NCBI GenBank assembly: GCA_002269645.1
Contig: NIVC01001010.1
Span: 1-64,000, forward strand
DNA from: Macrostomum lignano
Lineage: Eukaryota
Reading direction: 5' to 3'
DNA length: 64,000 nt
In this document: positions 36,621-64,000 of the stretch, one piece after another
Numbering within the stretch: the stretch's first letter is position 1
How the letters are laid out: each line of letters begins with the position of its first letter
Notes under the pieces: model-generated
Told to the model about the DNA's origin: nothing
Database searches by the model: none
What the model saw: only the letters and a program-made list of their open reading frames with translations
Program-made: the position numbers and the translations under genes

Positions 36621-36844
36621 GCAGCCCTAGACGTGTGGTGGCCATTTTAAAAGCAGAGTATTCTCGTGGCATATAAACCACATTTACGAGTCTAGAAATT
36701 TTTGGCTTTAAAACCTCTACGCGGCGTACCAAAAAATGCGTCACACCCTTTGCCGACGGCTGGCTGGCGCGGTTTCGTGCTCAGTGCATGGTGTCCCCCG
36801 TTCCAGACGGCAGCTAGCTCCACGAGTATACCCGTATGTAGTAA

Positions 36845-37740
36845 AGCCGCTTAACCGAAACAGACTTGCTACGTGGGTTGCTGCAACGGGATGTTCTTCT
36901 CACTGGCGCAGTGCGCAAAAACCGCGGCATCCCAAACCTGCTGCAGGCTGTAAATCTGCAGCCAACTTCTTCCGCCTTTGCACGCTCTGGAAATGTGCTT
37001 GCCTGCAAGTTTGTTGACAGGGAGCAGAGTGGCATCAAGACTGTTTTCGTATTGGACACCGCCGGATCTGCCGAATCTAGGCGGATCGTCCCCAAACCGA
37101 CTAGCGTGCTCTCGTACTCTAACAGCATGGGTGGCGTCAACATTGATTCCGCTCTACACCCGTACTTGGCCAATCGAAAAAGCATACAGTGGTTCCACAA
37201 ACTCGAATTTCACCTGATCATGCTGCTCGTTTGCAATGCTTGGATTGTCTGCCAACAGGCAGGTGGCAGCAAAACTTTTCTGCAGTTCTTGAGGCAGGCT
37301 ATTAAGATATTGGTTGAGGATAGCGGTGATGCTAGGCGGAGCCGGCATCGTAGAGTTGTTTTGGACGCCGAAGCGGCAGCAGGTGCGAGTGCCGGAGCGG
37401 CAGCAGGTGCGGGTGCCGGAGCGGCAGCAGGTGCGGGTGCCGGAGCGGGAGCAGGTGCGGTTGCCGGAGCGGCAGCAGGTGCGGTTGCCGGAGCGGCAGC
37501 AGGTGCGGGTGCCGGAGCGGCAGCAGGTGCGGGTGCCGGAGCGGCAGCAGGTGCGAGCGCTCATTTGCCGACTAAGGCGCCAATACAAGAAGCTCAAAGC
37601 CGCCCACGCAAGCGCTGCTGAATGTGCTACCAGCATGGCGTGGTGAAAAGAACATGTCCTGTTAACAGTGACTGTTTGCGTCGCTTTTCGAGGAGTTCCT
37701 GCATTGTGCTTGGGTGCTTGCTTTGCTAGCTGGCACATGG
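36845..37740 (+). pseudogene. Degenerate piggyBac-family transposase, C-terminal half
   Basis: TGAVRKNRGIP, KPTSVLSYSNSMGGV, RKSIQWFHKL..HL..NAW, and a Cys-rich end RKRC*MC..G..KRT..CFASWH with an in-frame stop and frameshifts. The MGGVD aspartate is lost and the N-terminal core was not found. Confidence 0.85.
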
Positions 37741-38479
37741 TTCATCCTAACTGACCATGGTTAGGATGAGCGGCTTTTGTGTTGAAAAAAACTATGAAGA
37801 TTTGGCGGCCCAATGCGCACTTCTATTTATTCATGATCTGAATTCCCTTTTTCTTCACCTATTCAATTATACACAGCTCGTTCTATTTATTAATAGTCAA
37901 GACTACTTCCTAAAAACAATACAGAAAGCATTCTGTTATCAATACAGAAAGCATGATCTACGTTCGTGTTATACTATACTACGTATACGATACAAATTTG
38001 TTAGCTACTTCATATACTAATAATTTGTTTCTAATACACACAGATGTACACTTGGTCCTGGTCTTATAATTCTTGATCTGTGATGATTGCCATAGACAGT
38101 GCCACTTTAACCTATAGGAAAATAAGCAGCTTTCCAACGAAAACGGATATGGCACGTTTATCGTGAAATTCTGCCATCCGTCTTCTGGCGGTTTTAAAAG
38201 CAGACAGATTTTCTGCAAATGCTCTGGGCGCAGCTCTTTAAGTAGAGCCAATTTAAAGCATATTGCGAGACGAAAATTTCACGAGTATTCAGTGCGCATA
38301 TTTCACAACTAACCCTGCGGTTCTCTTGTTGGAGGCTCGATATGAAATGGCGATATTTACTATTAGTGATTCTCTTTCTAATTTGTACCACTTAGCTGTT
38401 GGGCAATGTATGCATGCCGGCTTCATGTCGGCTTTGGTGGCTTGTGAATCTTTAATGACAGATATTGTAGCTTCTCACT

Positions 38480-40340
38480 GGCCCTGCATGACCAGCTGAG
38501 AGTCATTCTCACTGAGCCCTGCATGACCAAATGATTCATTCTCACTGAGCCCTGCATGACTAGCTGAGAGTCATTCTCACTGAGCCCTGCATGATCAGAT
38601 GAGTCATTCTCACTGAGCCCTGCATGACCAGCTGAGCCATTCTCACTGAGCCCTGCATGACCAGCTGAGAGTCATTCTCACTGAGCCCTGCATGATCAGA
38701 TGAGTCATTCTCACTGAGCCCTGCATGACCAGCTGAGAGTCATTCTCACTGAGCCCTGCATGATCAGATGAGTCATTCTCACTGAGCCCTGCATGACCAG
38801 CTGAGCCATTCTCACTGAGCCCTGCATGACCAGCTGAGAGTCATTCTCACTGAGCCCTGCATGATCAGATGAGTCATTCTCACTGAGCCCTGCATGACCA
38901 GCTGAGCCATTCTCACTGAGCCCTGCATGACCAGCTGAGAGTCATTCTCACTGAGCCCTGCATGACCAGATGAGTCATTCTCACTGAGCCCTGCATGACC
39001 AGATGAGTCATTCTCACTGAGCCCTGCATGACCAGATGAGTCATTCTCACTGAGCCCTGCATGACCAGCTGAGAGTCATTCTCACTGAGCCCTGCATGTC
39101 CAGATGAGTCATTCTCACTGAGCCCTGCATGACCAGATGAGAGTCATTCTCACTGAGCCCTGCATGACCAGATGAGAGTCATTCTCACTGAGCCCTGCAT
39201 GACCAGCTGAGAGTCATTCTCACTGAGCCCTGCATGACCAGCTGAGTCATTCTCACTGAGCCCTGCATGACCAGCTGAGCCATTCTCACTGAGCCCTGCA
39301 TGACCAGCTGAGAGTCATTCTCACTGAGCCCTGCATGACCAGATGAGTCATTCTCACTGAGCCCTGCATGACCAGATGAGTCATTCTCACTGAGCCCTGC
39401 ATGACCAGATGAGTCATTCTCACTGAGCCCTGCATGACCAGCTGAGAGTCATTCTCACTGAGCCCTGCATGTCCAGATGAGTCATTCTCACTGAGCCCTG
39501 CATGACCAGATGAGAGTCATTCTCACTGAGCCCTGCATGACCAGATGAGAGTCATTCTCACTGAGCCCTGCATGACCAGCTGAGAGTCATTCTCACTGAG
39601 CCCTGCATGACCAGATGAGTCATTCTCACTGAGCCCTGCATGACCAGATGAGTCATTCTCACTGAGCCCTGCATGACCAGCTGAGAGTCATTCTCACTGA
39701 GCCCTGCATGACCAGCTGAGAGTCATTCTCACTGAGCCCTGCATGACCAGCTGAGAGTCATTCTCACTGAGCCCTGCATGACCAGCTGAGAGTCATTCTC
39801 ACTGAGCCCTGCATGACCAGCTGAGAGTCATTCTCACTGAGCCTTGCATGACCAGCTGAGAGTCATTCTCACTGAGCCCTGCATGACCAGATGAGTCATT
39901 CTCACTGAGCCCTGCATGACCAGCTGAGTCATTCTCACTGAGCCCTGCATGACCAGATGAGTCATTCTCACTGAGCCCTGCATGACCAGATGAGTCATTC
40001 TCACTGAGCCCTGCATGTCCAGATGAGTCATTCTCACTGAGCCCCCCTGCATGACCAGATGAGTCATTCTCACTGAGCCTTGCATGACCAGCTGAGAGTC
40101 ATTCTCACTGAGCCTTGCATGACCAGCTGAGAGTCATTCTCACTGAGCCCTGCATGACCAGCTGAGAGTCATTCTCACTGAGCCTTGCATGACCAGCTGA
40201 GAGTCATTCTCACTGAGCCCTGCATGACCAGTTGAGAGTCATTATTACTGAGCCCTGCATGACCAGCTGAGAGTCATTATTACTGAGCCCTGCATGACCA
40301 GCTGAGAGTCATTCTCACTGAGCCCTGCATGACCAGCTCT
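38480..40340. repeat. 35-37 bp minisatellite, about 50 copies
   Basis: CATTCTCACTGAGCCCTGCATGACCAG(A/C)TGAG(A)GT repeated. Confidence 0.98.
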
Positions 40341-41509: not shown

Positions 41510-42860
41510 CGAAGGATTGGTGGGGGCAGAGGCCCTCGCTGAAGGATTAGACAGGAGGATTGGGGGGCAGAGGCCCTCGCTGAAGGATTGAGGGGCAGAG
41601 GCCCTCGCTGAAGGATTAGACAGGAGGATTGGGGGGCAGAGGCCCTCGCTGAAGGATTAGACAGGAGGATTGGGGGACAGAGGCCCTCGCTGAAGGATTA
41701 GACAGGAGGATTGGGGCAGAGGCCCTCGCTGAAGGATTAGACAGGAGGATTGGGGGGCAGAGGCCCTCGCTGAAGGATTAGACAGGAGGATTGGGACAGA
41801 GGCCCTCGCTGAAGGATTGAGGGGCAGAGGCCCTCGCTGAAGGATTAGACAGGAGGATTGGGTGGCAGAGGCCCTCGCTGAAGGATTGAGGGCAGAGGCC
41901 CTCGCTGGAGGATTGGGGGGGGGCAGAGGCCCTCACTGAAGGATTGGGGGCAGAGGCCCTCGCTGGAGGATTGGGGGCAGAGGCCCTCGCTGGAGGATTT
42001 GGGGGCAGAGGCCCTCGCTGGAGGATTGGGGGGGGGGCAGAGGCCCTCACTGAAGGATTGGGGGCAGAGGCCCTCGCTGGAGGATTGGGGGCAGAGGCCC
42101 TCGCTGGAGGATTTGGGGGCAGAGGCCCTCGCTGGAGGATTGGGGCAGAGGCCCTCGCTGAAGGATTGAGGGGCAGAGGCCCTCGCTGGAGGATTGGGGC
42201 AGAGGCCCTCGCTGAAGGATTGAGGGGCAGAGGCCCTCGCTGGAGGATTGGGGGGCAGAGGCCCTCGCTGAAGGATTGGGGCAGAGGCCCTCGCTGAAGG
42301 ATTGAGGGGCAGAGGCCCTCGCTGAAGGATTTGGGGGGGGCAGAGGCCCTCGCTGAAGGATTGGGACAGAGGCCCTCGCTGAAGGATTAGACTGGAGGAT
42401 TGGGGGCAGAGGCCCTCACTGGAGGATTTGGGGGGAGAGGCCCTCGCTGAAGGATTGGGGGGCAGAGGCCCTCGCTGAAGGATTGGGGGCAGAGGCCCTC
42501 GCTGAAGGATTGGGGGCAGAGGCCCTCGCTGAAGGATTGGGGGCAGAGGCCCTCGCTGAAGGATTGGGGGCAGAGGCCCTCGCTGAAGGATTGGGGCAGA
42601 GGCCCTCGCTGAAGGATTGGGGCAGAGGCCCTCGCTGAAGGATTGAGGGGCAGAGGCCCTCGCTGAAGGATTTGGGGGGGGGGGGCAGAGGCCCTCGCTG
42701 AAGGATTGGGACAGAGGCCCTCGCTGAAGGATTGGGACAGAGGCCCTCGCTGAAGGATTAGACTGGAGGATTGGGGGCAGAGGCCCTCACTGGAGGATTT
42801 GGGGGGAGAGGCCCTCGCTGAAGGATTAGACAGAAGGATGGGGGAGAGGCCCCTGCTGAA
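41510..42860. repeat. G-rich 26-40 bp minisatellite
   Basis: GGGGGCAGAGGCCCTCGCTGAAGGATT(AGACAGGAGGATT) repeated. Confidence 0.97.
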
Positions 42861-44579: not shown

Positions 44580-47500
44580 ATGGACCTAACATTTTTTCTA
44601 TCGGTCGTGCTATTCATCGCTATAGCCCTGCTGCTAGGCTTGCTAGTGTATTCTGGCCTACTGGCAGATATTACCGTGGAAGCGCGCAGATCTCCATACG
44701 ACGAACTGCTAGTGTTCTACAAAAGCCACATCGGGCCCTACTCCAATGTTGGCGACCTATTTCGCGAGACGCAACAACTGGCACCCAACAGCCAGCTCAT
44801 TGGCATCTATCTGGACGATCCAAAGTACACTGTGTCCGAAAATTGCCGCTCGGCCATTGGCGCCATTGTGCCTGATCCAGCTGCCGATTCTGACACTGTT
44901 CAGCGCCTGGAGTCGGCCGGCTATGTCCGCATGACTCTGCCTAAAGCTGACAATGTTGTCTATTGCACCTTTCCTATGATTAACAAGGTGTCCATCTATA
45001 TATCGGTTTGGCGAGTGTATCCCGCCATTCGAGACTATCTCCTTGTGAGTTCGTTTTCTTTTAGTTATGGTCAGCATCTATAGTCTAGTTGGCAGGTAGC
45101 AGCGCTGACTGAAGGACTCTGGGGGGGGGGGCAGGTAGCAGCGCTGACTGAAGGACCTTGGGGGGGGGCAGGTAGCAGCGCTGACTGAAGGACTCTGGGG
45201 GGGGGGGCAGGTAGCTGCGCTGACTGAAGGACTCTGGGGGGGGGGCAGGTAGCAGCGCATGACAACAGCAGGTACTGAAAGCGTATTAAAGTACCAATTT
45301 GGTCTGTCTAAATGACCATATTATATATCGGCAAGGCTATCATATTCGCCCGCAATATTTAAACTAGGAAAAAGGTCTCACCGCCCGGCCGTTCATCGAG
45401 ATTCACGAAGCCGGTCGCATTGTATTCCTGGCTCCGCTGTCTCGCTACGAAGAATTCCAGCCGGACATCTCTGCTCCGGCCGCCACCGCCGCTGCTGCAC
45501 CAGCGCCTGTTCCAGTTCAGTCGCCGCGGCAGGAGAACCCGGCAGAGGCCAGCACAGAAGAGCTAATCAGCGAGGCCGTTGCCGAGAACACGGAATCGGC
45601 TGCCCCGCCGTCTGGGTCCAGATTCGAGCCCAAACCTACAGTTGAAACTTCGCAGAGTAGCGTCGGCGGCGAGGTGGAGACGGTGTTCGAAAATCGACAA
45701 GACCTGCTCGAAGCCATGGCCGACCGTCCAGACGAAGAAGCCGCCACTGAGGCTGTCAAGGAACCGCAGCCGCAGCAGCCTCAAGCTCCACTTGACGATG
45801 CCATTGGCGATGAGGCTGGCGAAGGCATAGACTTCAGCGACGGAGAGGACGCCAACGCTGACAAGAACGCCAACGCTGACAGCTCGGAGCCAGCTGGAGA
45901 AGGCGACGAATCGTTGGAGGCGTTTGAGCAGCGACTCGCCCGTCTAGAGGAGGACCTGACGGACAAGCAGAGCCGGGTGCGCAGCGATGTCAGCCAGTTC
46001 AATAACAGCCTGGCTCTGGCCGAGATTGAGGAGCACCTGAGGCGCACCGCACCGGAGCCGGTAAGCCTGGTGGCACCCTGGCCTGGCCCATTTGTAGTGG
46101 GGCCATTGGGAGGCCCGTTGAAATTGTTACCGTGACAAGAATCGCCTAAAGAGTCATTGCAAACAACTCACTAGTGACTCTAGCCACTCTTACAAGACTC
46201 TTGTGACTTTTTAACGACTCAAGCGACTGCAATGTGACGGAGAGGTGACTGTTTAGTCACGAGCGCATCAAGTTTCTTGTAGAATCGGAAAAGAGTCGTC
46301 TAAGTCATTGTGTTAGCGCTCAACTTTCTACTAACTCAAGTAGTCTAAATAGAGTTGTTATAAACGCGAAATGCGATTCTGATTCATAAAATGACACAGA
46401 TGCGCTTTAAACGCAACTCCATGATTCTTTGGCGACTCTGGCACGCCTCAGATACGACTCCACAGCCCCAGAGTCATAAAAGCGCCCCAGAGTCGTTTGA
46501 GACAATGGAACGCCTTAAATGGACTCTTAGACGACTCTTTAACGACTTTTTTGGGACTTGTGCCGTGACATCTTGATCTCGTCGTTTGGTTCGTCGAGAG
46601 TCGGCTTCTTTTGACTGAGCTGAGTGATTGGGAAGAATATGAGAGTCGGAGACTGAAGAGGAGTATTAGAGACTGAGCTGAGTGATGGAGAGTCAGAGAC
46701 TGGAGAGGGTATTAGAGACTGAGCTGAGTGATGGAGAGTCGGAGACTGGAGAGGAGTATTAGACTGAGCTGAGTGATGGAGAGTCGGAGACTGGAGAGGA
46801 GTATTAGAGACTGAGCTGAGTGATGGAGAGTCGGAGACTGGAGAGGAGTATTAGAGACTGAGCTGAGTGATGGAGAGTCGGAGGCTGGAGAGGAGTATTA
46901 GAGACTGAGCTGAGTGATGGAGAGTCGGAGACTGGAGAGGAGTATTAGAGACTGAGCTGAGTGATGGAGAGTCGGAGACTGGAGAGGAGTATTAGAGACT
47001 GAGCTGAGTGATGGAGAGTCGGAGACTGGAGAGGAGTATTAGAGACTGAGCTGAGTGATGGAGAGTCGGAGACTGGAGAGGAGTATTAGACTGAGCTGAG
47101 TGATGGAGAGTCGGAGACTGGAGAGGAGTATTAGAGACTGAGCTGAGTGATGGAGAGTCGGAGACTGGAGAGGAGTATTAGAGACTGAGCTGAGTGATGG
47201 AGAGTCGGAGGCTGGAGAGGAGTATTAAAGACTGAGATGAGTGATGGAGAGTCGGAGACTGGAGAGGGTATTAGAGACTGAGCTGAGTGATGGGGAAGAG
47301 TAGTATTGCCTTGTCAATGATGAATCAGTTTTACAAAACCATAACTGACTATACCTCAGGGAGAGGAGGAGGCAGCGGCAGCGGCGGAGACGGAGCCTCA
47401 GCAAGCTGGCGCTACATTTGACGTTGAGCAGACTGTGGAAGAGTCCGGGCCTGATAAACAGCCGCAGGTTAGTTTAAAGTTTAAAGTCAACACGATCAAT

Positions 47501-49940
47501 GTTTAACTTACTTCCAGATTTGTATGAAATATCACATCGCTCTGAGATGGGAAGAGCTAGTTTCAGGAATCAACTAACTCGCAGATAATACGTCACTTAC
47601 TCTCCTGAATTTTTAGGGATCACTTATTTTATGAGTCACTTCTCGTAAATCGCATGCAGATCCATTTCCTTTCACGAGTCATTAATTCACACCATTGCAA
47701 CCCTATTCTTGTTATCCCCTATAGGAACCGCAGGAGTCTGCAGACAATGCAGCCACCGAGTTTCTCGTGACATTCTCAGATGACCAAGAACAAGCCAGCA
47801 ATAGCAATCAGGTAAGTTAATGGTCCTCAGCTGAATGTGGTGTTTGAAATAAACAGGAACTAGTGACAGGCCGCTAAAGTACAGGAGGAGCTAGTGGCAG
47901 GCCGCTAAAGTACAGGAGGAGCTAGTGGCAGGCCGCTAAAGTACAGGAGAAGCTAGTGGCAGGCCGCTAAAGTACAGGAGAAACCAGTGGCAGGCCGCTA
48001 AAGTACAGGAGAAGCTAGTGGCAGGCCGCTAAAGTACAGGAGAAACCAGTGGCAGGCCGCTAAAGTACAGGAGAAGCTAGTGGCAGGCCGCTAAAGTACA
48101 GGAGAAACCAGTGGCAGGCCGCTAAAGTACAGGAGAAGCCAGTGGCAGGCCGCTAAAGTACAGGAGAAGCAAGTGGCAGGCCGCTAAAGTACAGGAGGAG
48201 CTAGTGGCAGGCCGCTAAAGTACAGGAGAAGCTAGTGGCAGGCCGCTAAAGTACAGGAGAAGCAAGTGACAGGCCGCTAAAGTACAGGATGAGCTAGTAG
48301 TGGCAGGCCGCTAAAGTACAGGAGAAGCTAGTGGCAGGCCGCTAAAGTACAGGAGAAGCAAGTGACAGGCCGCTAAAGTACAGGATGAGCTAGTAGTGGC
48401 AGGCCGCTAAAGTACAGGAGAAGCAAGTGGCAGGCCGCTAAAGTACAGGATGAGCTAGTAGTGGCAGGCCGCTAAAATACAGGAGGAGCTAGTGGCAGGT
48501 CGCTAAAGTACAGGAGAAGCAAGTGGCAGGCCGCTAAAGTACAGGATGAGCTAGTAGTGGCAGGCCGCTAAAGTACAGGAGAAGCAAGTGGCAGGCCGCT
48601 AAAGTACAGGATGGGCTAGTAGTGGCAGGCCGCTAAAGTACAGGAGGAGCTAGTAGTGGCAGGCCGCTAAAGTACAGGAGGAGCTAGTGGCAGGTCGCTA
48701 AAGTACAGGAGGAGCTAGCGGCAGTTAGAACACTGGAAAACCGCTAGATAATTATCACCCGAACTCTCAACCTCCAGACTCAGATGAGCCCAGAAGAAGC
48801 TAGCGGTCGCAGCCTAGGTGGACCGGAACCGGCTCCAGACTCTGTGCCGTTGATTGTACTTGAGCCGGCTGAACCTCTCGCTCAGGTAGGTTTGCTGCCA
48901 ACGCACTTCCTAGATAACCTACTGTCAGTAGCCAGCCTGGAAAATTTAGATTTTTAATTTCAACGGACTTTTGTAGGCAATGACTTGGAGTTTAGCCATG
49001 GAGATTGATGTGTAGAAAATCACAGAATCAGCCTTATCGTGTATAATCGGTATAAAGATGGGGGTTTAGGGCAGGGGTCGGCGACCTCCGGCCCGCGCGG
49101 CTTCTTTATCTGGCTCTCGGGGTCCTTGTAACTTCACAAAAGCAATCCGGCCAGCTCAAGGTTTTGTGTCTCTTTTCAGCTCTCCCCTCATCTCTGTTTT
49201 TCTCCTCTATCTATTCCTTCTAATTCACTTTGTCACCTGATCCGCAGTCATGAGCTCGATTGTTTATATGGCCTTCGGGGTTAAACGGTTTTAAGGAGAT
49301 GAATTCTGGCACTCCAGATCCTCGCTCTAGGACTCCTTGGCTTAGCCCCCCCCCTCCTCCCGGCCGCTCCTCACAGATTGAGATTGAGGCATCTCTTATT
49401 GGATAGTGCAACGTATATACTCAAGATGCAGATAGTATCTGCTTTATTTTCTAGCAGGAGCAGCCGCAGGAGCAGCAGCAGCCGCAGGAGCAATCACAGG
49501 AGCAGCAGCAGCCGCAGGAGCAGTCGCAGGAGCAGCAGCAGCCGCAGGAGCAGCAGCAGCCGCAGGAGCAGTCGCAGGAGCAGCAGCAGCCGCAGGAGCA
49601 GTCGCAGGAGCAGCAGCAGCCGCAGGAGCAGCAGCAGCCGCAGGAGCAGCAAGAGCAGCAGCCGCAAACAGACGACATGCCAGACGAGAAAGCGGCCGCT
49701 CCAACCGAAGACTCAGCCGACCGCCAGGCTGACGTGGACCCAGCCCAGGTGGACCAATTCGTACAGTCGGTTGTACAGCGCGCCCAGCAGATCTGCGAAC
49801 AGCAAGCCGAAGCTGGCGAGGTGGCCAGGCCAACAGGCGGCGATGACCCGGGCACGGAGAGGCGAGAAAAGCGGCTGCCCTCGCCGTTGCATCATCAGAC
49901 TAGCCGGAGCAGTTTGGACGAGACTAAGCCCGAAGCTTAA
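44580..49940 (+). CDS. TEX264: TEX264 homolog (N-terminal TM + GyrI-like domain) with an extended acidic/Gln-rich tail; exons 44580-45044, 45368-46060, 47360-47467, 47725-47811, 48778-48885, 49455-49940, about 648 aa
   Basis: YSGLLADITV, YKSHIGPYSNVGDLF, IGIYLDDP..CRSAIG, TFP..SI...RVYPAI and PFIEI..RIVFLAPL parallel TEX264 as I recall it. All introns are GT..AG, phase 0. Confidence 0.88.
45085..45260. repeat. Intronic approximately 36-bp minisatellite with poly-G
   Basis: GGCAGGTAGCAGCGCTGACTGAAGGACTCTG(G)n, about 5 copies. Confidence 0.9.
46140..46570. repeat. Dispersed GACTC/GAGTC-rich repeat, related to about 32000-32150
   Basis: Shared segments such as CGACTGCAA..GAGAGG(C/T)GACTGT and GACTCTTT(T)AACGACTTTTT in two different introns. 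Confidence 0.55.
46615..47295. repeat. Intronic 47-bp minisatellite
   Basis: GAGACTGAGCTGAGTGATGGAGAGTCGGAGACTGGAGAGGAGTATTA repeated. Confidence 0.97.
47855..48720. repeat. Intronic 31-34 bp minisatellite
   Basis: GTGGCAGGCCGCTAAAGTACAGGAGAAGCTA repeated. Confidence 0.97.
49072..49220. mobile_element. Truncated hAT-like MITE, relative of 13392-13607
   Basis: CAGGGGTCGGCGACCTCCGGCCCGCG terminus. The internal AGCAATCCGG..CTCAAGGTTT(T)GTGTCTCTT segment is shared with about 13415-13450. Confidence 0.55.
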
Positions 49941-50279: not shown

Positions 50280-50635
50280 CGGCAAGTGGCACAGGTATAA
50301 AACATCACCCCCAAAGTGGCACAGGTATGTATAAAGCATCACCCCCAAAGTGGCACAGGTATAAATCACCAACCCCAAAGTGGCACAGGTATAAATCACC
50401 AACCCCAAAGTGGCACAGGTATAAATCACTAACCCCAAAGTGGCACAGGTATAAATCACCAACCCCAAAGTGGCACAGGTATAAAACATCACCCCCAAAG
50501 TGGCACAGGTATGTATAAAGCATCACCCCCAAAGTGGCACAGGTATAAATCACCAACCCCAAAGTGGCACAGGTATAAATCACCAACCCCAAAGTGGCAC
50601 AGGTATAAATCACCAACCCCAAAGTGGCACAGGGG
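50280..50635. repeat. 30-35 bp minisatellite
   Basis: CCCCAAAGTGGCACAGGTATAAATCACCAA repeated. Confidence 0.95.
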
Positions 50636-51452: not shown

Positions 51453-51669
<217 letters not shown>

Positions 51670-52733
51670 TACTAGTGTATGTGTGGTTACATAGACCGTT
51701 GTTCTGACAATGCGTTAGGTGGACCAATTAGTTATGGTTAGAAAATCGGGGAACTAGCTTAATTTGAGACGCTTGGAAAATACTGTTGCCTTTTTAATTT
51801 CAAAAGGTCTTCAATTCGAGTAAATTAAACTATTCGAACTATGTTGTTAGGTAGACCAGGTTTAAACGGACCTTTAAGAACATGATGGTGTACGTGGACC
51901 AATATAAAAATCTAGAGCAACAAAGATTTTTAACAGTCGATAGTTATTGTTCTGAACTGCTGTTCAAGTTTTCCTGTAAAGCATGAAAGCGATGTTAAAA
52001 TTTTTATTTGTATTATTTGTTTAAAAAATTTAGCGATGTAGGACTGAGTGAGTAATTATTGTAAAGGTACCGCAATTACATTTGGATCATACGAGCTACG
52101 AGCTATAACTATAAATGATTAACACTCATCAAATATGATGACATAAAGGTGGTAAAATGCTAAATTTGACAAAAATTACTAAACTGCAAAGCAAAACTTA
52201 AACAAAAGAGAATAATTGGAAGTTTTTCGATTTTTTAGACGTGCAGTGCAAAAAATACTGCAGTTTTGACATTCAACAAGCCAGCCCAAGCCAAAGTTTT
52301 TAGATGCATTTATAGTTTAAATTCACAGTTTATAGAAACGTGGGAGAAGCGTTACAAATCAATTGTGAAAATAGTGCGGTATACCGCGACAAATGAATAA
52401 TAGGAAAATTTTCGGGGCTAACTGCCTCCATGTCACTTCGGTAGGCTAAAATTTGAATGAATTTATAATGATGAATGAATGTATTCATCAAATTTTGGAG
52501 AGAGATTAAAAAAAAATTCGGATATTTTGGCACAGAAATTTTTATGGCAAGCTACTTTGTGTCTTGCAAATCTAAAGTTGCTTTCGCTATCGAAGTGACA
52601 TAATATTTAATCAATCTCAGCCACTAATTATAAGGTTAGAGAAAATACATGTATCATTGAACAAAACGTGAGTTCAGTGCAGCAAGGAAAGAGCACCATT
52701 ATAGGTTGGAGACTTAAGCATACTCGTAACCAG

Positions 52734-55700
52734 CTATTTCTTAAATTTCTGCATTTCGTTAAAAAACTTGCTTTTAAGCTTCAGAACAGATCGATCTTTC
52801 AGGGCTGGCTCATCTTGCTTCAGCCTAAGCAGCGCATTTAACCCAGGAACTTTTCCACCTGATTCTTCAAGCATTCTGTCGAAAACACGTTTGAACGCTG
52901 CGTCTTCCTCTTCTGACCACTTGACATGCACCTGCTTCAGTTTTCGGTCTTTCTTTCTGCTGACTTTAGATGGAGGTTCGTAGGAAGGATCATCTTCGGC
53001 GGAATCAGGCGGAGAATGCAGATGCGACTTTGTCTCCGGCTTTCTCTTTTTCTTAGATTCTTTTAATTCCTTCAAAGAGAGAGGCGCACCACGAAAATCC
53101 AGCTGTGTCTGCTCTTCGTCATGATTTTCTGATGCTTCTCCGGAGGATATGCGACATGGACGCTTTGATTTGCTTTCGGTGGAATTAGCTGGTTGTGGTC
53201 GCTTTCTAATCAAACCAGACTTGCTACTCAAAGTTTTGCTGCTGCTTTGTTCATTCTCGTTTGAAAACTTTGCTGACTTCTTTGTCTTGGAAGCAACTTC
53301 GGCCTCATTCGAGTCATCCAAATCGACATCAATGTCATCAACTTCGATTTCCTCCAGTTTCTTTCCTTTCAGCTGATCTAGCTTCCCAGATTCAATCGCA
53401 AGCATCAGCTTACCGACTTTTGCTAGCTCGATTGTTCGCTCGTGAATTCGATAGAACGTATGATGCACTTGTAGGCTGTGGCCTAGATGTCTGGACAGCC
53501 AGCCCAATTCGTTTTCATTCAACTCGAGGATTTGTGATACTGTTGCCACATATTTCCTCAGTTTTGTTGACGTCAAGCGTTCAGGATGTTTGAGATCTGC
53601 ACACTTTGAAGTGACGTTTTGAATGGATTCAAACGGTGATAAATAACGCATTCCATTGAGCATGCCAAAAACGTACTCGTTGCCAGTTGGTGAATGACGT
53701 GTGCTTATGAGCTTATCGATGAGAGTGGCCACCTCTAGTGGCACGAGCAGAGGTACCTTTTTTCCTGCTCGTTTGCCGCGGACATACGGAAGAAACATGC
53801 GCCCTTTAATCTTTAACTCAAGCTCACTCAGTAGAGAGTCAGTAGTGTCGTCATATTCTTGATCGAGCTTTTTTGCTGCTTCCCAGTCTTTAAGCGTCAG
53901 TTTGAAGGTTTCCGACGCTCGCCTTCTGTTCAAAATCATGAGGCGGATTGCAACTAGCTCAGCAACGCTTTTCCAGTAGGCAGGTTCGGATAGATTATCA
54001 TCAACAACCTGTGCCAGCGCCTGCTTTAAATAGCATGTGATGGTTGTAATGTCATCCGTCAAGGGCAGAGTTTCGGCTTTGTCGGCTTTTCTTTCCTTCA
54101 AAGTCAGATGTGCGATCGTAGAAACTTTTCGCTTCCAAAGACTCTCAAAGACAGAAATAAAATTTCGTCTTTCCTCAACCTTTGATAATAGATCACTTTT
54201 TAAGGCGAAAACCATGGAGACTTCGGCAGCCGTCTTGAGACTAAAGCCGATTTTTAGCGCAATGGAAGGAATGTCAAAGCTGTCAGATGTCGCTTCGCTT
54301 TTCTTGCTCATAAATCCTGCGACTGTTCTTGTCGCCTCAACAAGATCATCGAAATGACGAGCGGTTAGTGCATTCTCCAAATCAATGGACGGCTGCTCTA
54401 CACGTTCTCTAAACGCTACTAACAAGCGTGCAAGCTCCCTCATCTTAGTGGAAACAATCTGTCGGCCTGTCTTTCCAGCTGTGTAGCCTTCAAACCAAAA
54501 GTGCCCAAGACTTAAAATTAATTTGTCAGAGCGGACGACAATGGAAAGGTGATCTTTTTTCATTCTGCTGAGCAGGTCTTGATATTCTTCAGGAAACGTC
54601 GAGGGGAGGCACGATGACAGCAGCAGACAATTTCCTTGCGAAGCGGCATTCGAACGACTTGAAGATTTCGAGTTAGATCTAAATTTGCAGCGGTCCCAGT
54701 GGCGACTTATTTCACGTCCGTAAAAAAATCCAAAGCAGTGAACACAAGGAAGATAGGTGTGTACTTCCGTAGACTCCATGGTCACGCTTTTCTCCCGACA
54801 GACAATAATTTTACCGTCCTTTTCATCCTTCAGTACAGCAATATTGTGATGAAAATCGCCTAGAAGTCGCAGTCTGTCCATCTCCCGATTGTAACCTAAC
54901 AGAGAAATTAAAAAAGGCAGCCAATTAAATATAAATCTTTACGATCACAACAAAAAAGAATCAATCGATCTGACAGTTTAAATCATACATATAGAGGCGT
55001 TCTAATAAAACTGTTGTGCCAAACTGAAGCACGAGTAAATTCTGACTTGCTTCAGACAAAATTTGAAAGAATTAGTTTTCATTTTAAAAAACTAAAACTT
55101 AACTATTTAGATCAAACTAGAAATATTCAAAAACTAAAACCAGTGGACTATTTATTCAGTTTTGATGTAAGAAGCATATTCACTTAGGCTTACCATTAGA
55201 ATTAGAACCATAAGATAGCGCGCGCTGCACGTCCACTTGATCACTATGACAACGAATAATATGCCGGCGTATTTTAGAAAACAGCTCATTACAGAAAACG
55301 CAATTATGACGCTTCTTCTCAAATGATCGGCCCTTCATCTTCTTCTGTGCATTCGACTCCAATTTTTCATTTTCGTCAGCAATCATTTGAAGAGCTGGAT
55401 GTAGATCCGACGACAACTCCTCGAGCTCGACGTCACCAAAGTCGAATTCAGGCACATCATCTACATTGCCAGAGGCAGCACTTTCTTCCACACAGGAATT
55501 CATCACCTTCTCAAACTCTACTTCGTCATCGAAATCACTCTCTTCGCTTTCGTTGCTGTCATCTAAGTCAACTTTTAATTTTTTTAATCGAGAACCACCA
55601 AATCGCAACTTATTCATAACACGACTTCTAAGAGCAGACAGCCTTGAATTCGAAACTTCATTCGTCAACGGAACATTCGTCGTCGTAGACTGCTTTAAGG

Positions 55701-55986
55701 GAGAACGTCCGGATGAAGAATTCGGGAGCGCCAAGACACCAGGACTGCTCTTCTTGTCTCCAGGATGATTTTTCCGGGTTTGTCCAGCAGCCGCTGCCTC
55801 TTGAGTAGCTCTCGACACCCTGGCCGATGCTGAGAGCTGTTCACGCGACTTATGAACGGAAGTCGTCTTCTTCGTAGCCGCCTTCTCTACACTCGACTCA
55901 TCGCGAGATGCACACGGTTCGCTGTCGCCAGCGTCAGCATCAGCAGAAGATCCCTCTGCTTGTGGGATGGTCACGTCGCTGCCCAT
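52734..55986 (-). CDS. Tyrosine recombinase protein of a Crypton-like DNA transposon; exons 55986-55194 and 54895-52734, about 984 aa
   Basis: C2H2-like CVFC..RHIIRCH, C2HC-like YLPCVHC..RHWDRC, YR catalytic set NRRRASE / VRGKR / STKLRKY / HLGH / HHTFY, and a Myb/SANT-like KWSEEE tail. A phase-1 intron (GT at 55193, AG at 54897-54896) restores a continuous frame. Confidence 0.85.
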
Positions 55987-55989
55987 CTG

Positions 55990-58900
55990 CACAATGATTG
56001 ATTTTGATGAACTAATGTAAACATATTATGACTCAATGAGGATTCAGCTGGATCCCATGTCTGAAAGTCTGTTTGGCAGTCGGTGCTTGAAGCATCCATA
56101 CTCAATGTGAACGACAATCAATGAGGGTTTAGCTGGACCCCATGTCTGAAAGTATGTTTGGCAGTCGATGCTTGAAGCACCCACAGTCAATGTGAAACAT
56201 TCAATGAGGGTTTAGCTGGACCCCATGTCTGAAAGTATGTTTGGCAGTCGATGCTTGAAGCATCCACACTCAATGTGAACGACAATCAATGAGGGTTTAG
56301 CTGGACCCCATGTCTGAAAGTATGTTTGGCAGTCGGTGCTTGAAGCACCCACAGTCAATGTGAAACATTCAATGAGGGTTTAGCTGGACCCCATGTCTGA
56401 AAGTATGTTTGGCAGTCGGTGCTTGAAGCACCCACAGTCAATGTGAACGACATTCAATGAGGGTTTAGCTGGACCCCATGTCTGAAAGTATGTTTGGCAG
56501 TCGGTGCTTGAAGCACCCACAGTCAATGTGAACGACATTCAATGAGGGTTTAGCTGGACCCCATGTCTGAAAGTATGTTTGGCAGTCGGTGCTTGAAGCA
56601 TCCACACTCAATGTGAACGACAATCAATGAGGGTTTAGCTGGACCCCATGTCTGAAAGTATGTTTGGCAGTCGATGCTTGAAGCACCCACAGTCAATGTG
56701 AAACATTCAATGAGGGTTTAGCTGGACCCCATGTCTGAAAGTATGTTTGGCAGTCGATGCTTGAAGCACCCACAGTCAATGTGAAACATTCAATGAGGGT
56801 TTAGCTGGACCCGCGACAAATATGCTGAAATTTGATTGATTGTGCTGACTTGGCATACGTCATGATAAAGTTTGCTTTTTTACAATCGAAACTAAGACAT
56901 TGAAAGCTGCAGCATATTTTTGGCCCAATAAAAATGATATTCATTAAGTAAAGCGAATGCACTTTTCCAGCGTTAGTGTAACTCAACTCAGCAATGCTCA
57001 CCGATTCAAAATGCTGACGCTGTGGTGACGGTTTCCGGTCTTGTATTTTGTTAGCAGATGACGTGATCATGAGATCAGCAGCACTTGAGTCGGATTCCTC
57101 AACCATAGCATTCTCCTTCGATGACTGGAGCGCCAAGGTACTAGGAGAGCTCTTCTTGTCTCCAGGATGGTTTTTCCGGGTTTGTCCAGCAGCCGCTGCC
57201 TCTTGAGTAGCTCTCGACACCCTGGCCGATGCTGAGAGCTGTTCACGCGACTTATGAACGGAAGTCGTCTTCTTCGTAGCCGCCTTCTCTACACTCGACT
57301 CATCGCGAGATGCACACGGTTCGCTGTCGCCAGCGTCAGCATCAGCAGAAGATCCCTCTGCTTGTGGGATGGTCACGTCGCTGCCCATCTGCACAATGAT
57401 TGATTTTGATGAACTAATGTAAACATATTATGACTCAATGAGGATTCAGCTGGATCCCATGTCTGAAAGTCTGTTTGGCAGTCGGTGCTTGAAGCATCCA
57501 CACTCAATGTGAACGACAATCAATGAGGGTTTAGCTGGACCCCATGTCTGAAAGTATGTTTGGCAGTCGGTGCTTGAAGCACCCACAGTCAATGTGAAAC
57601 ATTCAATGAGGGTTTAGCTGGACCCCATGTCTGAAAGTATGTTTGGCAGTCGGTGCTTGAAGCATCCATACTCAATGTGAACGACAATCAATGAGGGTTT
57701 AGCTGGACCCCATGTCTGAAAGTATGTTTGGCAGTCGATGCTTGAAGCACCCACAGGCAATGTGAAACATTCAATGTGGGTTTAGCTGGACCCCATGTCT
57801 GAAAGTATGTTTGGCAGTCGATGCTTGAAGCACCCACAGTCAATGTGAAACATTCAATGAGGGTTTAGCTGGACACGCGACAAATATGCTGAAATTTGAT
57901 TGATTGTGCTGACTTGGCATACGTCATGATAAAGTTTGCTTTTTTACAATCGAAACTAAGACATTGAAAGCTGCAGCATATTTTTGGCCCAATAAAAATG
58001 ATATTCATTAAGTAAAGCGAATGCACTTTTCCAGCGTTAGTGTAACTCAACTCAGCAATGCTCACCGATTCAAAATGCTGACGCTGTGGTGACGTTTTCC
58101 GGTCTTGTATTTTGTTAGCAGATGACGTGATCATGAGATCAGCAGCACTTGAGTCGGATTCCTCAACCATAGCATTCTCCTTCGATGACTGGAGCGCCAA
58201 GGTACTAGGAGAGCTCTTCTTGTCTCCAGGATGGTTTTTCCGGGTTTGTCCAGCAGCCGCTGCCTCTTGAGTAGCTCTCGACACCCTGGCCGATGCTGAG
58301 AGCTGTTCACGCGACTTATGAACGGAAGTCGTCTTCTTCGTAGCCGCCTTCTCTACACTCGACTCATCGCGAGATGCACACGGTTCGCTGTCGCCAGCGT
58401 CAGCATCAGCAGAAGATCCCTCTGCTTGTGGGATGGTCACGTCGCTGCCCATCTACACAATGATTGATTTTGATGAACTAATGTAAACATATTATGACTC
58501 AATGAGGATTCAGCTGGATCCCATGTCTGAAAGTCTGTTTGGCAGTCGGTGCTTGAAGCATCCATACTCAATGTGAACGACAATCAATGAGGGTTTAGCT
58601 GGACCCCATGTCTGAAAGTATGTTTGGCAGTCGATGCTTGAAGCACCCACAGGCAATGTGAAACATTCAATGAGGGTTTAGCTGGACCCCATGTCTGAAA
58701 GTATGTTTGGCAGTCGATGCTTGAAGCACCCACAGTCAATGTGAAACATTCAATGAGGGTTTAGCTGGACCCGCGACAAATATGCTGAAATTTGATTGAT
58801 TGTGCTGACTTGGCATACGTCATGATAAAGTTTGCTTTTTTACAATCGAAACTAAGACATTGAAAGCTGCAGCATATTTTTGGCCCAATAAAAATGATAT

Positions 58901-61900
58901 TCATTAAGTAAAGCGAATGCACTTTTCCAGCGTTAGTGTAACTCAACTCAGCAATGCTCACCGATTCAAAATGCTGACGCTGTGGTGACGTTTTCCGGTC
59001 TTGTATTTTGTTAGCAGATGACGTGATCATGAGATCAGCAGCACTTGAGTCGGATTCCTCAACCATAGCATTCTCCTTCGATGACTGGAGCGCCAAGGTA
59101 CTAGGAGAGCTCTTCTTGTCTCCAGGATGGTTTTTCCGGGTTTGTCCAGCAGCCGCTGCCTCTTGAGTAGCTCTCGACACCCTGGCCGATGCTGAGAGCT
59201 GTTCACGCGACTTATGAACGGAAGTCGTCTTCTTCGTAGCCGCCTTCTCTACACTCGACTCATCGCGAGATGCACACGGTTCGCTGTCGCCAGCGTCAGC
59301 ATCAGCAGAAGATCCCTCTGCTTGTGGATGGTCACGTCGCTGCCCATCTGCACAATGATTGATTTTGATGAACTAATGTAAACATATTATGACTCAATGA
59401 GGATTCAGCTGGATCCCATGTCTGAAAGTCTGTTTGGCAGTCGGTGCTTGAAGCACCCACAGTCAATGTGAAACATTCAATGAGGGTTTAGCTGGACCCC
59501 ATGTCTGAAAGTATGTTTGGCAGTCGGTGCTTGAAGCACCCACAGTCAATGTGAACGACAATCAATGAGGGTTTAGCTGGACCCCATGTCTGAAAGTATG
59601 TTTGGCAGTCGATGCTTGAAGCACCCACAGGCAATGTGAAACATTCAATGAGGGTTTAGCTGGACCCCATGTCTGAAAGTATGTTTGGCAGTCGATGCTT
59701 GAAGCACCCACAGTCAATGTGAAACATTCAATGAGGGTTTAGCTGGACCCGCGACAAATATGCTGAAATTTGATTGATTGTGCTGACTTGGCATACGTCA
59801 TGATAAAGTTTGCTTTTTTACAATCGAAACTAAGACATTGAAAGCTGCAGCATATTTTTGGCCCAATAAAAATGATATTCATTAAGTAAAGCGAATGCAC
59901 TTTTCCAGCGTTAGTGTAACTCAACTCAGCAATGCTCACCGATTCAAAATGCTGACGCTGTGGGGACGGTTTCCGGTCTTGTATTTTGTTAGCAGATGAC
60001 GTGATCATGAGATCAGCAGCACTTGAGTCGGATTCCTCAACCATAGCATTCTCCTTCGATGACTGGAGCGCCAAGGTACTAGGAGAGCTCTTCTTGTCTC
60101 CAGGATGGTTTTTCCGGGTTTGTCCAGCAGCCGCTGCCTCTTGAGTAGCTCTCGACACCCTGGCCGATGCTGAGAGCTGTTCACGCGACTTATGAACGGA
60201 AGTCGTCTTCTTCGTAGCCGCCTTCTCTACACTCGACTCATCGCGAGATGCACACGGTTCGCTGTCGCCAGCGTCAGCATCAGCAGAAGATCCCTCTGCT
60301 TGTGGGATGGTCACGTCGCTGCCCATCTGCACAATGATTGATTTTGATGAACTAATGTAAACATATTATGACTCAATGAGGATTCAGCTGGATCTCATGT
60401 CTGAAAGTCTGTTTGGCAGTCGGTGCTTGAAGCATCCACACTCAATGTGAACGACAATCAATGAGGGTTTAGCTGGACCCCATGTCTGAAAGTATGTTTG
60501 GCAGTCGATGCTTGAAGCACCCACAGGCAATGTGAAACATTCAATGAGGGTTTAGCTGGACCCCATGTCTGAAAGTATGTTTGGCAGTCGATGCTTGAAG
60601 CACCCACAGTCAATGTGAAACATTCAATGAGGGTTTAGCTGGACCCGCGACAAATATGCTGAAATTTGATTGATTGTGCTGACTTGGCATACGTCATGAT
60701 AAAGTTTGCTTTTTTACAATCGAAACTAAGACATTGAAAGCTGCAGCATATTTTTGGCCCAATAAAAATGATATTCATTAAGTAAAGCGAATGCACTTTT
60801 TCAGCGTTAGTGTAACTCAACTCAGCAATGCTCACCGATTCAAAATGCTGACGCTGTGGTGACGGTTTCCGGTCTTGTATTTTGTTAGCAGATGACGTGA
60901 TCATGAGATCAGCAGCACTTGAGTCGGATTCCTCAACCATAGCATTCTCCTTCGATGACTGGAGCGCCAAGGTACTAGGAGAGCTCTTCTTGTCTCCAGG
61001 ATGGTTTTTCCGGGTTTGTCCAGCAGCCGCTGCCTCTTGAGTAGCTCTCGACACCCTGGCCGATGCTGAGAGCTGTTCACGCGACTTATGAACGGAAGTC
61101 GTCTTCTTCGTAGCCGCCTTCTCTACACTCGACTCATCGCGAGATGCACACGGTTCGCTGTCGCCAGCGTCAGCATCAGCAGAAGATCCCTCTGCTTGTG
61201 GGATGGTCACGTCGCTGCCCATCTGCACAATGATTGATTTTGATGAACTAATGTAAACATATTATGACTCAATGAGGATTCAGCTGGATCCCATGTCTGA
61301 AAGTCTGTTTGGCAGTCGGTGCTTGAAGCATCCATACTCAATGTGAACGACAATCAATGAGGGTTTAGCTGGACCCCATGTCTGAAAGTATGTTTGGCAG
61401 TCGATGCTTGAAGCACCCACAGGCAATGTGAAACATTCAATGAGGGTTTAGCTGGACCCCATGTCTGAAAGTATGTTTGGCAGTCGATGCTTGAAGCACC
61501 CACAGTCAATGTGAAACATTCAATGAGGGTTTAGCTGGACCCGCGACAAATATGCTGAAATTTGATTGATTGTGCTGACTTGGCATACGTCATGATAAAG
61601 TTTGCTTTTTTACAATCGAAACTAAGACATTGAAAGCTGCAGCATATTTTTGGCCCAATAAAAATGATATTCATTAAGTAAAGCGAATGCACTTTTCCAG
61701 CGTTAGTGTAACTCAACTCAGCAATGCTCACCGATTCAAAATGCTGACGCTGTGGTGACGTTTTCCGGTCTTGTATTTTGTTAGCAGATGACGTGATCAT
61801 GAGATCAGCAGCACTTGAGTCGGATTCCTCAACCATAGCATTCTCCTTCGATGACTGGAGCGCCAAGGTACTAGGAGAGCTCTTCTTGTCTCCAGGATGG

Positions 61901-64000
61901 TTTTTCCGGGTTTGTCCAGCAGCCGCTGCCTCTTGAGTAGCTCTCGACACCCTGGCCGATGCTGAGAGCTGTTCACGCGACTTATGAACGGAAGTCGTCT
62001 TCTTCGTAGCCGCCTTCTCTACACTCGACTCATCGCGAGATGCACACGGTTCGCTGTCGCCAGCGTCAGCATCAGCAGAAGATCCCTCTGCTTGTGGGAT
62101 GGTCACGTCGCTGCCCATCTGCACAATGATTGATTTTGATGAACTAATGTAAACATATTATGACTCAATGAGGATTCAGCTGGATCCCATGTCTGAAAGT
62201 CTGTTTGGCAGTCGGTGCTTGAAGCACCCACAGTCAATGTGAAACATTCAATGAGGGTTTAGCTGGACCCCATGTCTGAAAGTATGTTTGGCAGTCGGTG
62301 CTTGAAGCACCCACAGTCAATGTGAACGACAATCAATGAGGGTTTAGCTGGACCCCATGTCTGAAAGTATGTTTGGCAGTCGATGCTTGAAGCACCCACA
62401 GGCAATGTGAAACATTCAATGAGGGTTTAGCTGGACCCCATGTCTGAAAGTATGTTTGGCAGTCGATGCTTGAAGCACCCACAGTCAATGTGAAACATTC
62501 AATGAGGGTTTAGCTGGACCCGCGACAAATATGCTGAAATTTGATTGATTGTGCTGACTTGGCATACGTCATGATAAAGTTTGCTTTTTTACAATCGAAA
62601 CTAAGACATTGAAAGCTGCAGCATATTTTTGGCCCAATAAAAATGATATTCATTAAGTAAAGCGAATGCACTTTTCCAGCGTTAGTGTAACTCAACTCAG
62701 CAATGCTCACCGATTCAAAATGCTGACGCTGTGGGGACGGTTTCCGGTCTTGTATTTTGTTAGCAGATGACGTGATCATGAGATCAGCAGCACTTGAGTC
62801 GGATTCCTCAACCATAGCATTCTCCTTCGATGACTGGAGCGCCAAGGTACTAGGAGAGCTCTTCTTGTCTCCAGGATGGTTTTTCCGGGTTTGTCCAGCA
62901 GCCGCTGCCTCTTGAGTAGCTCTCGACACCCTGGCCGATGCTGAGAGCTGTTCACGCGACTTATGAACGGAAGTCGTCTTCTTCGTAGCCGCCTTCTCTA
63001 CACTCGACTCATCGCGAGATGCACACGGTTCGCTGTCGCCAGCGTCAGCATCAGCAGAAGATCCCTCTGCTTGTGGGATGGTCACGTCGCTGCCCATCTG
63101 CACAATGATTGATTTTGATGAACTAATGTAAACATATTATGACTCAATGAGGATTCAGCTGGATCTCATGTCTGAAAGTCTGTTTGGCAGTCGGTGCTTG
63201 AAGCATCCACACTCAATGTGAACGACAATCAATGAGGGTTTAGCTGGACCCCATGTCTGAAAGTATGTTTGGCAGTCGATGCTTGAAGCACCCACAGGCA
63301 ATGTGAAACATTCAATGAGGGTTTAGCTGGACCCCATGTCTGAAAGTATGTTTGGCAGTCGATGCTTGAAGCACCCACAGTCAATGTGAAACATTCAATG
63401 AGGGTTTAGCTGGACCCGCGACAAATATGCTGAAATTTGATTGATTGTGCTGACTTGGCATACGTCATGATAAAGTTTGCTTTTTTACAATCGAAACTAA
63501 GACATTGAAAGCTGCAGCATATTTTTGGCCCAATAAAAATGATATTCATTAAGTAAAGCGAATGCACTTTTTCAGCGTTAGTGTAACTCAACTCAGCAAT
63601 GCTCACCGATTCAAAATGCTGACGCTGTGGTGACGGTTTCCGGTCTTGTATTTTGTTAGCAGATGACGTGATCATGAGATCAGCAGCACTTGAGTCGGAT
63701 TCCTCAACCATAGCATTCTCCTTCGATGACTGGAGCGCCAAGGTACTAGGAGAGCTCTTCTTGTCTCCAGGATGGTTTTTCCGGGTTTGTCCAGCAGCCG
63801 CTGCCTCTTGAGTAGCTCTCGACACCCTGGCCGATGCTGAGAGCTGTTCACGCGACTTATGAACGGAAGTCGTCTTCTTCGTAGCCGCCTTCTCTACACT
63901 CGACTCATCGCGAGATGCACACGGTTCGCTGTCGCCAGCGTCAGCATCAGCAGAAGATCCCTCTGCTTGTGGGATGGTCACGTCGCTGCCCATCTGCACA
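55990..64000 (-). repeat. Tandem array of 0.9-1.4 kb units, each a 387-nt exon-like segment (MGSDV..HFES) plus an intron containing 83/85-bp minisatellites; continues past the window end
   Basis: Exon ATGs at 57388, 58452, 59347, 60326, 61222, 62118, 63097 and 63993. The spacings of 896, 979 and 1064 (895 at the copy with a 1-nt deletion) differ by 83 or 83+85. Confidence 0.95.

Follow-up and report, generated by a model that had tools for sequence, protein, structure and literature searches.

A probable exon-cassette array encoding a variable-length linker in the recombinase gene of a ~16-kb transposon of Macrostomum lignano

Can a tandem array of coding exons give copies of one mobile element recombinases of different length? 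The question is raised by a 64,000-nt stretch of the flatworm Macrostomum lignano (part of contig NIVC01001010.1, assembly Mlig_3_7; hereafter the window), in which an initial annotation, made from the letters alone, had noted tandem phase-0/0 exons upstream of a tyrosine-recombinase gene and proposed a length-tunable N-terminus. Eight of the nine 387-nt phase-0/0 repeat exons of this locus lie inside the window, upstream of zinc-finger/tyrosine-recombinase exons, and belong to an element of ~16 kb with a single multi-exon gene. Probably, the array is a coding repeat of exon cassettes which gives the recombinase of this transposon a linker of variable length, and which was amplified by unequal exchange.

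The locus of the window (L002; window coordinate = 69328 - L002 coordinate; 100% identity along 21 kb) was compared for the array with two further loci of Mlig_3_7, L001 and L003. On the minus strand, TTGTG[C/T]AG followed by ATGGGCAGC occurs eight times (63097-55986), with a ninth ATG directly after AG (63993) by the window edge, and the donor GAATCG/GTGAGC also occurs eight times; the repeated AG/ATG acceptors and TCG/GTGAGC donors (e.g. 57001) of the initial annotation were found in place (Table 1). The 387-nt open exon ascribed to every unit holds for seven of the eight window exons, which are exactly 387 nt and free of stops, and fails for the exon at 59347-58962, which has 386 nt. One C is missing there from a CCC run at 59325-59327 (GGG on the plus strand), the 1-nt loss in a GGG run reported near 59327. 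The reported change from CAG to TAG in the acceptor of the 58452 exon is likewise real (TTGTGTAG, not TTGTGCAG), and the estimate of at least eight copies is matched by eight in the window and nine in the locus. Past the window edge, L002 has one further repeat exon and then three small chromodomain exons. Because these chromodomain exons lie upstream, the array is internal to the gene and not its start, and the proposal that it forms the N-terminus of the recombinase has to be given up.

Each unit consists of the 387-nt exon, ~190 nt of unique intron, an 83-85-bp satellite, and ~50 nt to the next acceptor. Unit length ranges from 895 to 1402 bp, a variation due to satellite copy number alone (3.3 to 9.3). 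The exon that ends the array (55986-55194) shares the start of the repeat exon, as had been described, with a match over its first 262 nt; its first 240 nt carry one mismatch, which extends the shared start to ~80 codons in place of the ~75 given earlier. Beyond 262 nt, similarity of this exon to the repeat exon was not detectable and no other source of its divergent part was found. No source of the last 125 nt of the repeat exon and the first 190 nt of its intron was found in the window or in four flatworm loci. Across the three loci, AG/GT sites, an open frame and a length of exactly 387 nt occur in 34 of 35 repeat exons. Any number of copies could be spliced in without a frame break, because the exon is 3 x 129 nt long, of phase 0/0, and flanked by the same acceptor and donor in every copy.

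Evidence that the cassettes are spliced comes from the M. lignano gene models, which were made by StringTie/TACO from RNA-seq and a de novo transcriptome, with open reading frames (ORFs) assigned by TransDecoder, and are not ab initio predictions (PMC5730564). Along its entire length, the 715-aa minus-strand ORF at 52734-54881 has 100% identity to BOX15_Mlig016835g4 (P0001). In both P0001 and the g3 model (P0049), a repeat exon follows directly on chromodomain exon 3 (QQKTMT/MGSDVT) and is itself spliced to the last exon (QRQHFES/MGSDVT). The g2 model (P0048), from the window's own locus, runs from a partial repeat to a repeat exon and on to the last exons, with two repeat exons in a row; it takes exons 59347 and 58452 (both Thr120), omits exon 57388 (Pro120), and starts right after the 59325 frameshift. 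Dscam-type mutually exclusive exons were considered and ruled out, as the exons are near-identical and P0048 has two in a row. Chromodomain exon 1 of L002 has a run of A7 (L002 2901-2925, ~window-equivalent 66,400) where L001 and L003 have A8, so that its frame is shifted, and P0048 is therefore 5'-partial.

The junctions predicted in the initial annotation are present exactly in P0001, P0049 and P0048, and both cassette splice sites are in use according to these transcript-derived models. The cassette donor GTGAG and acceptor CAG also fit the cis-splice consensus of the species (donor GTGAG, acceptor CAG; PMC8629364). The further suggestion that splicing builds a recombinase with n repeats is supported here at n = 1-2, and in relatives at n = 4 and n = 8, and goes beyond the models where full arrays are concerned; the mRNA, we infer, takes up most or all of the copies.

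The protein is ordered as a chromodomain, the 129-aa Ser/Ala/Glu/Lys-rich modules, two C2H2-like zinc fingers, a tyrosine-recombinase core, and a Myb/SANT-like tail. The chromodomain (PF00385, E = 8.6e-7) is encoded by the three upstream exons, seen in L001 and L002; searches for these exons found none in the window, just outside of which they lie, and none in a paralogous element (L004, NIVC01000029.1). The window protein had no match at all in Pfam, PHROGs or PDB sequences, nor did the family profile give a recombinase match in such searches, which included a profile search of PDB sequences. The tyrosine-recombinase assignment rests on a homologue and on motifs. The homologue, P0031 (30% identity, E = 4e-69), matches PF00589 with 27.8 bits (threshold, 27.1 bits; residues 285-406), and this stretch aligns to residues ~358-479 of the window ORF; PF00589 matches in four of the 45 aligned family members. 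Invariant or at least 90% conserved in the 45 sequences are NRRRxGE, RGKRGRK, LRK (R442), LGH (H468), and Y477, the last nine residues after H468. One canonical position differs, the His of H-x-x-R being Thr in this family. With two AlphaFold models (pLDDT ~79), Foldseek gave the archaeal recombinase XerA (5hxy) as the top PDB match and also listed the HP1 integrase catalytic domain (1aih), at levels that are not significant (E = 0.44-0.77, TM = 0.23-0.37). Overall, the enzyme is accepted as a tyrosine recombinase, as judged from homology and conserved residues. No match to DUF3504/PF12012 was found in the 45 members, even at E <= 10. A DIRS/Ngaro retrotransposon was ruled out, there being no reverse transcriptase/RNase H ORF or Pfam domain in the element.

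The element occurs at no fewer than three unrelated sites, and the three copies compared define it. Homology among L001, L002 and L003 begins ~1.2 kb before the chromodomain ATG and runs as far as window position ~51670; the 3' 5 kb of the copies are 99% identical. Their flanks have no mutual similarity, which rules out a simple segmental duplication. The homologous sequence is bordered on both sides by (CTGT)n, from ~8 to >50 copies, the same microsatellite adjoining the 5' end outside the window. The ends carry an imperfect 24-bp terminal inverted repeat, in which TAGTGTATGTGTGTTTGCGTAGAC and the reverse complement of the 3' end agree at ~21 of 24 positions, and there is no other long ORF between the element ends within the window's part of the element. 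Shared copies, unrelated flanks, (CTGT)n borders, inverted-repeat ends and the lack of another gene together identify a recently active one-gene DNA transposon, which either sits in, or carries along, a CTGT microsatellite. Were the ends joined in a circle, the inverted repeats would flank a CTGT run, like a recombinase site with a microsatellite as crossover region, and such an arrangement would fit the Crypton integration model (PMC3212892, PMC9977147).

Repeat exons number two in L001, nine in L002, and 24 in L003, so that copy number differs from insertion to insertion. In this sense, the variable length proposed initially is supported by the comparison with other genomic copies. Exon variants can be locus-specific (G at exon position 296 in L003 only), and the window array has a 3-unit higher-order pattern of 979/896/896 bp; together, these argue for amplification in place by unequal exchange, most likely between the near-identical intronic satellite arrays. 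The 24-unit array of L003 also contains, at 15423-16961, a repeat of the three chromodomain exons together with 630 bp of the sequence upstream, 99.3% identical to the first copy, so duplication affects larger blocks as well.

The proposed sequence of events is that one exon + intron unit was tandemly amplified in place, that unequal exchange between the near-identical intronic 83-bp satellite arrays would change the number of units, and that any number of cassettes would be spliced in with the frame kept. The linker between the chromatin-reading and the DNA-binding/catalytic parts would therefore vary by element copy. We further infer that linker length matters for the element, where it may set the reach from a chromatin anchor to the recombination site or serve multivalent interaction.

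Similar arrays occur in relatives. The window protein has hundreds of strong animal relatives, and its core family comprises 4477 cluster representatives at E <= 1e-30 (16604 at E <= 1e-3), with hosts among flatworms, molluscs, echinoderms, cnidarians, fishes, and at least one insect. The family is very large and apparently undescribed; no description of it, or of Cryptons in Macrostomum, was found in the literature. Its N-terminal extensions are highly variable, with chromo, SET, FHA and kinase domains. The paralogous M. lignano element (L004 1513-18223) encodes a recombinase 48% identical to that of the window in a similar layout with unrelated repeats: its phase-0/0 exons, four of 72 aa and four of 75 aa, have AG/GT sites and are parted by introns that hold a 71-bp satellite. 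The transcript-derived model P0003 holds the four 75-aa exons in a row. Neither the repeat peptides nor the satellites of the two elements are detectably related, and homology between the 83-bp and 71-bp satellites was rejected, 21 of 200 shuffles being equally good. The 5' end of L004 is homologous to that of the window element (score 75 vs 22 +/- 4.5), and its borders are (GTCT)n x102 at the 5' end and only (TCTG)3 at the 3' end. L004 also has a C-terminal 14-aa repeat in four copies (42-bp repeat, L004 16697-16873).

A third array was found in the sea cucumber Apostichopus japonicus (L005, CM075707.1), where P0038 consists of SET-domain exons, eight 33-aa repeats (L005 7618-12975), and then zinc-finger/recombinase exons. 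Each repeat is its own 99-nt exon, ~760 bp from the next, and all eight are in the gene model. The exons of this array are 88.7% identical vs 93.1% for the introns, and codon differences number 265 nonsynonymous vs 50 synonymous (pairwise counts, hence non-independent), which hints that these cassette modules may be diversifying. There is no intronic satellite in the sea cucumber array, so satellites are not needed for such arrays. Not every family member has exon cassettes, since the short repeats of an oyster homologue sit inside a single exon. Tandem repeats, with periods of 8-217 aa, are present in 48 of 134 family representatives taken from an exhaustive profile search; repeats N-terminal of the core occur in 31 of the 52 representatives with an N-terminal extension of more than ~200 aa.

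Several observations weigh against a linker that is made at full length and matters, and favor, among the alternatives, a neutral array that would have arisen recently as a side effect of unequal exchange within the satellite-rich intron of a young transposon, most copies being skipped, or the transcripts degraded, and copy number being of no consequence to the element. However many copies a locus has (2, 9 or 24), its models hold no more than one or two repeat exons, which fits collapse in short-read assembly and equally fits skipping of most copies. Short reads cannot count the repeats because the repeat-to-repeat and repeat-to-last-exon junctions are identical for 240 nt, and one-repeat models at the 2- and 24-copy loci are what an assembly collapse would give. 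To look for transcript-derived proteins that hold further repeats, the N-terminal 427 aa were used as a protein query, which returned one old gene model only. Across 34 exon copies, six of 387 sites are variable (one synonymous, five nonsynonymous); purifying selection is not evident, and as units this similar hold too few substitutions, their open frames and intactness say nothing on selection. The arrays are, going by this near-identity, very young. One window unit is frameshifted, and the two homopolymer frameshifts of the window copy (repeat exon and chromodomain exon 1) are either real decay or PacBio errors. The window, moreover, is dense in minisatellites, as is the genome, 15% of which is tandem repeats (PMC5730564). 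On the other side, both splice sites are kept in all 34 other units, the same architecture arose with unrelated sequences in the 48%-identical paralogue and in an echinoderm, where models include four and eight cassettes, and of the family members whose N-terminus is long, 60% have repeats there, repeats at the C-terminus being few. On this balance, a neutral array is unlikely, and an exon-cassette repeat encoding a variable linker is preferred.

The satellites themselves raise another alternative, in which they would be arrays of the recombinase's own motif and site-specific recombination would add or remove cassettes. A 12-bp subterminal motif, GGTCCACCTAAC, is exact near the 3' end and recurs with one mismatch at window 51846-51857; toward the 5' end, where the corresponding features of the element fall within L002 1768-2046, it stands inverted at 1816 and 1846 and in an exact copy at 2035. 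An exact copy of the motif is found once per 71-bp unit of the L004 satellite, and GGTCCAGCTAAA, with two mismatches to it, is in every 83-bp unit of the window satellite, the chance expectation of an exact 12-mer being 0.008 in the window. This pattern suggests that the intronic satellites may be built around a candidate protein-binding motif of the element, a lead that was noticed post hoc. Crypton recombinases are known to cause rearrangements between sites that resemble their targets (PMC9977147). Set against this, the overall similarity of the 83-bp unit to the 71-bp unit is not significant, and homologous exchange between kilobase units that are 97-100% identical suffices to explain the array; self-catalysed change of cassette number is thus quite unlikely. 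A bolder extension, also of low probability and based on the same sequence patterns, is that the array would be a self-adjusting module by which the element tunes its own chromatin-tethering linker, with repeat-expanded N-terminal linkers being a selected trait of the family. If true, it would give eukaryotes an equivalent of the cassette systems that recombinases drive in bacteria.

The cassettes could instead be alternative first exons, each AG/ATG taking a spliced leader or transcription starting within the array. M. lignano trans-splices ~30-39% of its genes with a leader that ends in ATG (PMC8629364, PMC5730564), an ATG directly after AG is the layout typical of trans-spliced first exons, and the older ML2 models P0050 and P0051 begin with MGSDVT. 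Every internal acceptor, however, has a cis donor upstream, which favors cis-splicing (PMC8629364), and the acceptor GTGCAG falls outside the enriched trans-splice motif [T/C]TNCAG (PMC8629364). The annotation pipeline, which cuts models at transcript boundaries, made no cut at these acceptors and kept the chromodomain exons joined to a repeat exon, and a start in an upstream cassette would still need cis-splicing of the downstream ones. The spliced-leader alternative is mildly disfavoured by these sequence features, and first exons throughout the array are altogether very unlikely. An expansion of the tandem copies by the PacBio assembler, which might be suspected from a DNA-level view based on one assembly, a 33-kb array in L003 longer than a typical read, and two homopolymer indels suggestive of residual errors, is extremely unlikely, because satellite copy number differs non-periodically between units that carry locus-specific variants, the arrays differ among the three loci, model P0047 of the independent older ML2 assembly has three tandem exon starts, and arrays of this kind are present also in the paralogue and in a sea cucumber genome.

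If the exon-cassette repeat does encode a variable linker, it bears on a group of elements, the eukaryotic tyrosine-recombinase DNA transposons, that is poorly understood and whose ends and target rules are mostly unknown. This element offers defined ends (inverted repeats by (CTGT)n), a candidate binding motif, and very recent copies. Variable linkers made of repeats are found again and again between the core and a chromatin module (chromo, SET, FHA), whole exons being their building blocks in at least three lineages, which suggests that linker length or valency may be under recurrent pressure, for example from target-site choice or escape from host silencing. If inclusion tracks copy number, otherwise identical genes would make proteins of ~1300, 2200 and 4150 residues, a natural series for a test of linker length.

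The remainder of the window (1-50700) is dense in unrelated minisatellites with periods of 15-143 bp (Table 1), and strong swings in G+C content and skew track these arrays. An ORF fragment at 36866-37621 (plus strand) matches a piggyBac-type transposase over the latter's C-terminal part (PF13843, E = 4.8e-7) and is flanked by large arrays of a 35-37-bp minisatellite (34448-36621 and 38472-40338).

Table 1. Features of the window, in window coordinates; for array exons, the ATG directly after AG and the G of the donor are given.
Feature	Position	Strand	Basis or remark
Repeat exon, intact, at window edge	63607-63993	-	ATG 63993; donor G 63606
Repeat exon, intact	62711-63097	-	ATG 63097; donor G 62710
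Repeat exon, intact	61732-62118	-	ATG 62118; donor G 61731
Repeat exon, intact	60836-61222	-	ATG 61222; donor G 60835
Repeat exon, intact	59940-60326	-	ATG 60326; donor G 59939
Repeat exon, 386 nt, 1-nt homopolymer deletion	58962-59347	-	ATG 59347; donor G 58961; P0048 coding sequence begins just past the deletion
Repeat exon, TAG acceptor not CAG	58066-58452	-	ATG 58452; donor G 58065; included in P0048
Repeat exon, 387 nt, 129 aa, phase 0/0, nearest the last exons	57002-57388	-	ATG 57388; donor G 57001; skipped in P0048
Intronic minisatellite, 83-85 bp, 9.3 copies, each with GGTCCAGCTAAA	56033-56812	-	
Equivalent satellite arrays	57435-57874, 58499-58772, 59394-59750, 60373-60646, 61269-61542, 62165-62521, 63144-63417		
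Exon: 262-nt match to repeat exon, then acidic linker and first C2H2-like zinc finger	55194-55986	-	ATG 55986
Intron GTAAGC...TGTTAG, phase 1	54896-55193	-	basis includes gene model P0001
Last coding exon (second zinc finger, tyrosine-recombinase core, acidic/basic tail, C-terminal Myb/SANT-like segment, stop)	52734-54895	-	
12-bp subterminal motif GGTCCACCTAAC, exact	51714-51725	-	
Right terminal inverted repeat GTCTATGTAACCACACATACACTA, imperfect inverse of 5' end TAGTGTATGTGTGTTTGCGTAGAC	51673-51696	-	score 46 vs shuffles 23 +/- 3.7
(CTGT)n on gene strand, (ACAG)n on plus strand; adjoins 3' end of element	51453-51669	-	homology between copies stops here
Minisatellites, examples	155-872, 8134-8901, 10241-11859, 23774-24340, 28472-29253, 41584-42759, 46641-48724, 50284-50633		

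Among known systems, the element is closest in kind to the Crypton DNA transposons, reportedly the subject of Goodwin et al. in 2003 and treated by Kojima & Jurka in 2011 (PMC3212892). As in Cryptons, a tyrosine recombinase is the only enzyme, there is no reverse transcriptase, and the gene bears introns (PMC3212892); the same short sequence, here CTGT units, flanks the element at either end, which is compatible with integration through recombination of an element site with a matching target. Cryptons are said to be without terminal inverted repeats (PMC3212892, PMC13465315), whereas the M. lignano element has an imperfect 24-bp one together with repeated subterminal motifs, and the flanking repeat is a whole microsatellite in place of the 4-6 bp of Cryptons. 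Crypton recombinases also mediate rearrangements between target-like sites (PMC9977147). The present family differs further in its chromodomain/SET/FHA N-terminus, its exon-cassette arrays and the missing DUF3504/PF12012 signal. With no such signal and with terminal inverted repeats, the element is, on sequence grounds, not placed in a named Crypton group (A, F, I or S).

Chromoviruses likewise combine a mobile-element enzyme with a chromodomain that presumably tethers integration to marked chromatin. They are Ty3/gypsy retrotransposons, however, whose enzyme is a DDE integrase and whose chromodomain is C-terminal, whereas the present element has a tyrosine recombinase with the chromodomain on its N-terminal side and a repeat linker between the two. 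Endogenous nimaviruses have tyrosine recombinases that insert into telomere/microsatellite repeats (PMC10871703). They share with the M. lignano element a eukaryotic tyrosine recombinase with a zinc-binding domain of the C2H2 type, plus a place in simple-sequence repeats, a likeness drawn by description only, and differ in being giant viral genomes of crustaceans for which no exon arrays are reported.

The array itself is best compared with the kringle IV type 2 (KIV-2) coding variable number tandem repeat of LPA, with a 5.6-kb unit, 1-40 units and >40 protein isoforms (PMC11462820, PMC6314250). Both have a kilobase tandem unit of whole exons and introns that preserves the frame, is near-identical from copy to copy, and varies strongly in copy number, which in LPA sets the coding length. 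LPA is, however, a host gene with a folded domain and two exons per unit and with proven inclusion of all units, whereas the M. lignano cassette has one exon per unit and encodes a low-complexity linker in the recombinase gene of a transposon. The phenomenon is thus a coding exon-cassette repeat, of a kind known from LPA KIV-2; what is unusual is its place, the recombinase gene of a transposon family, in which it recurs.

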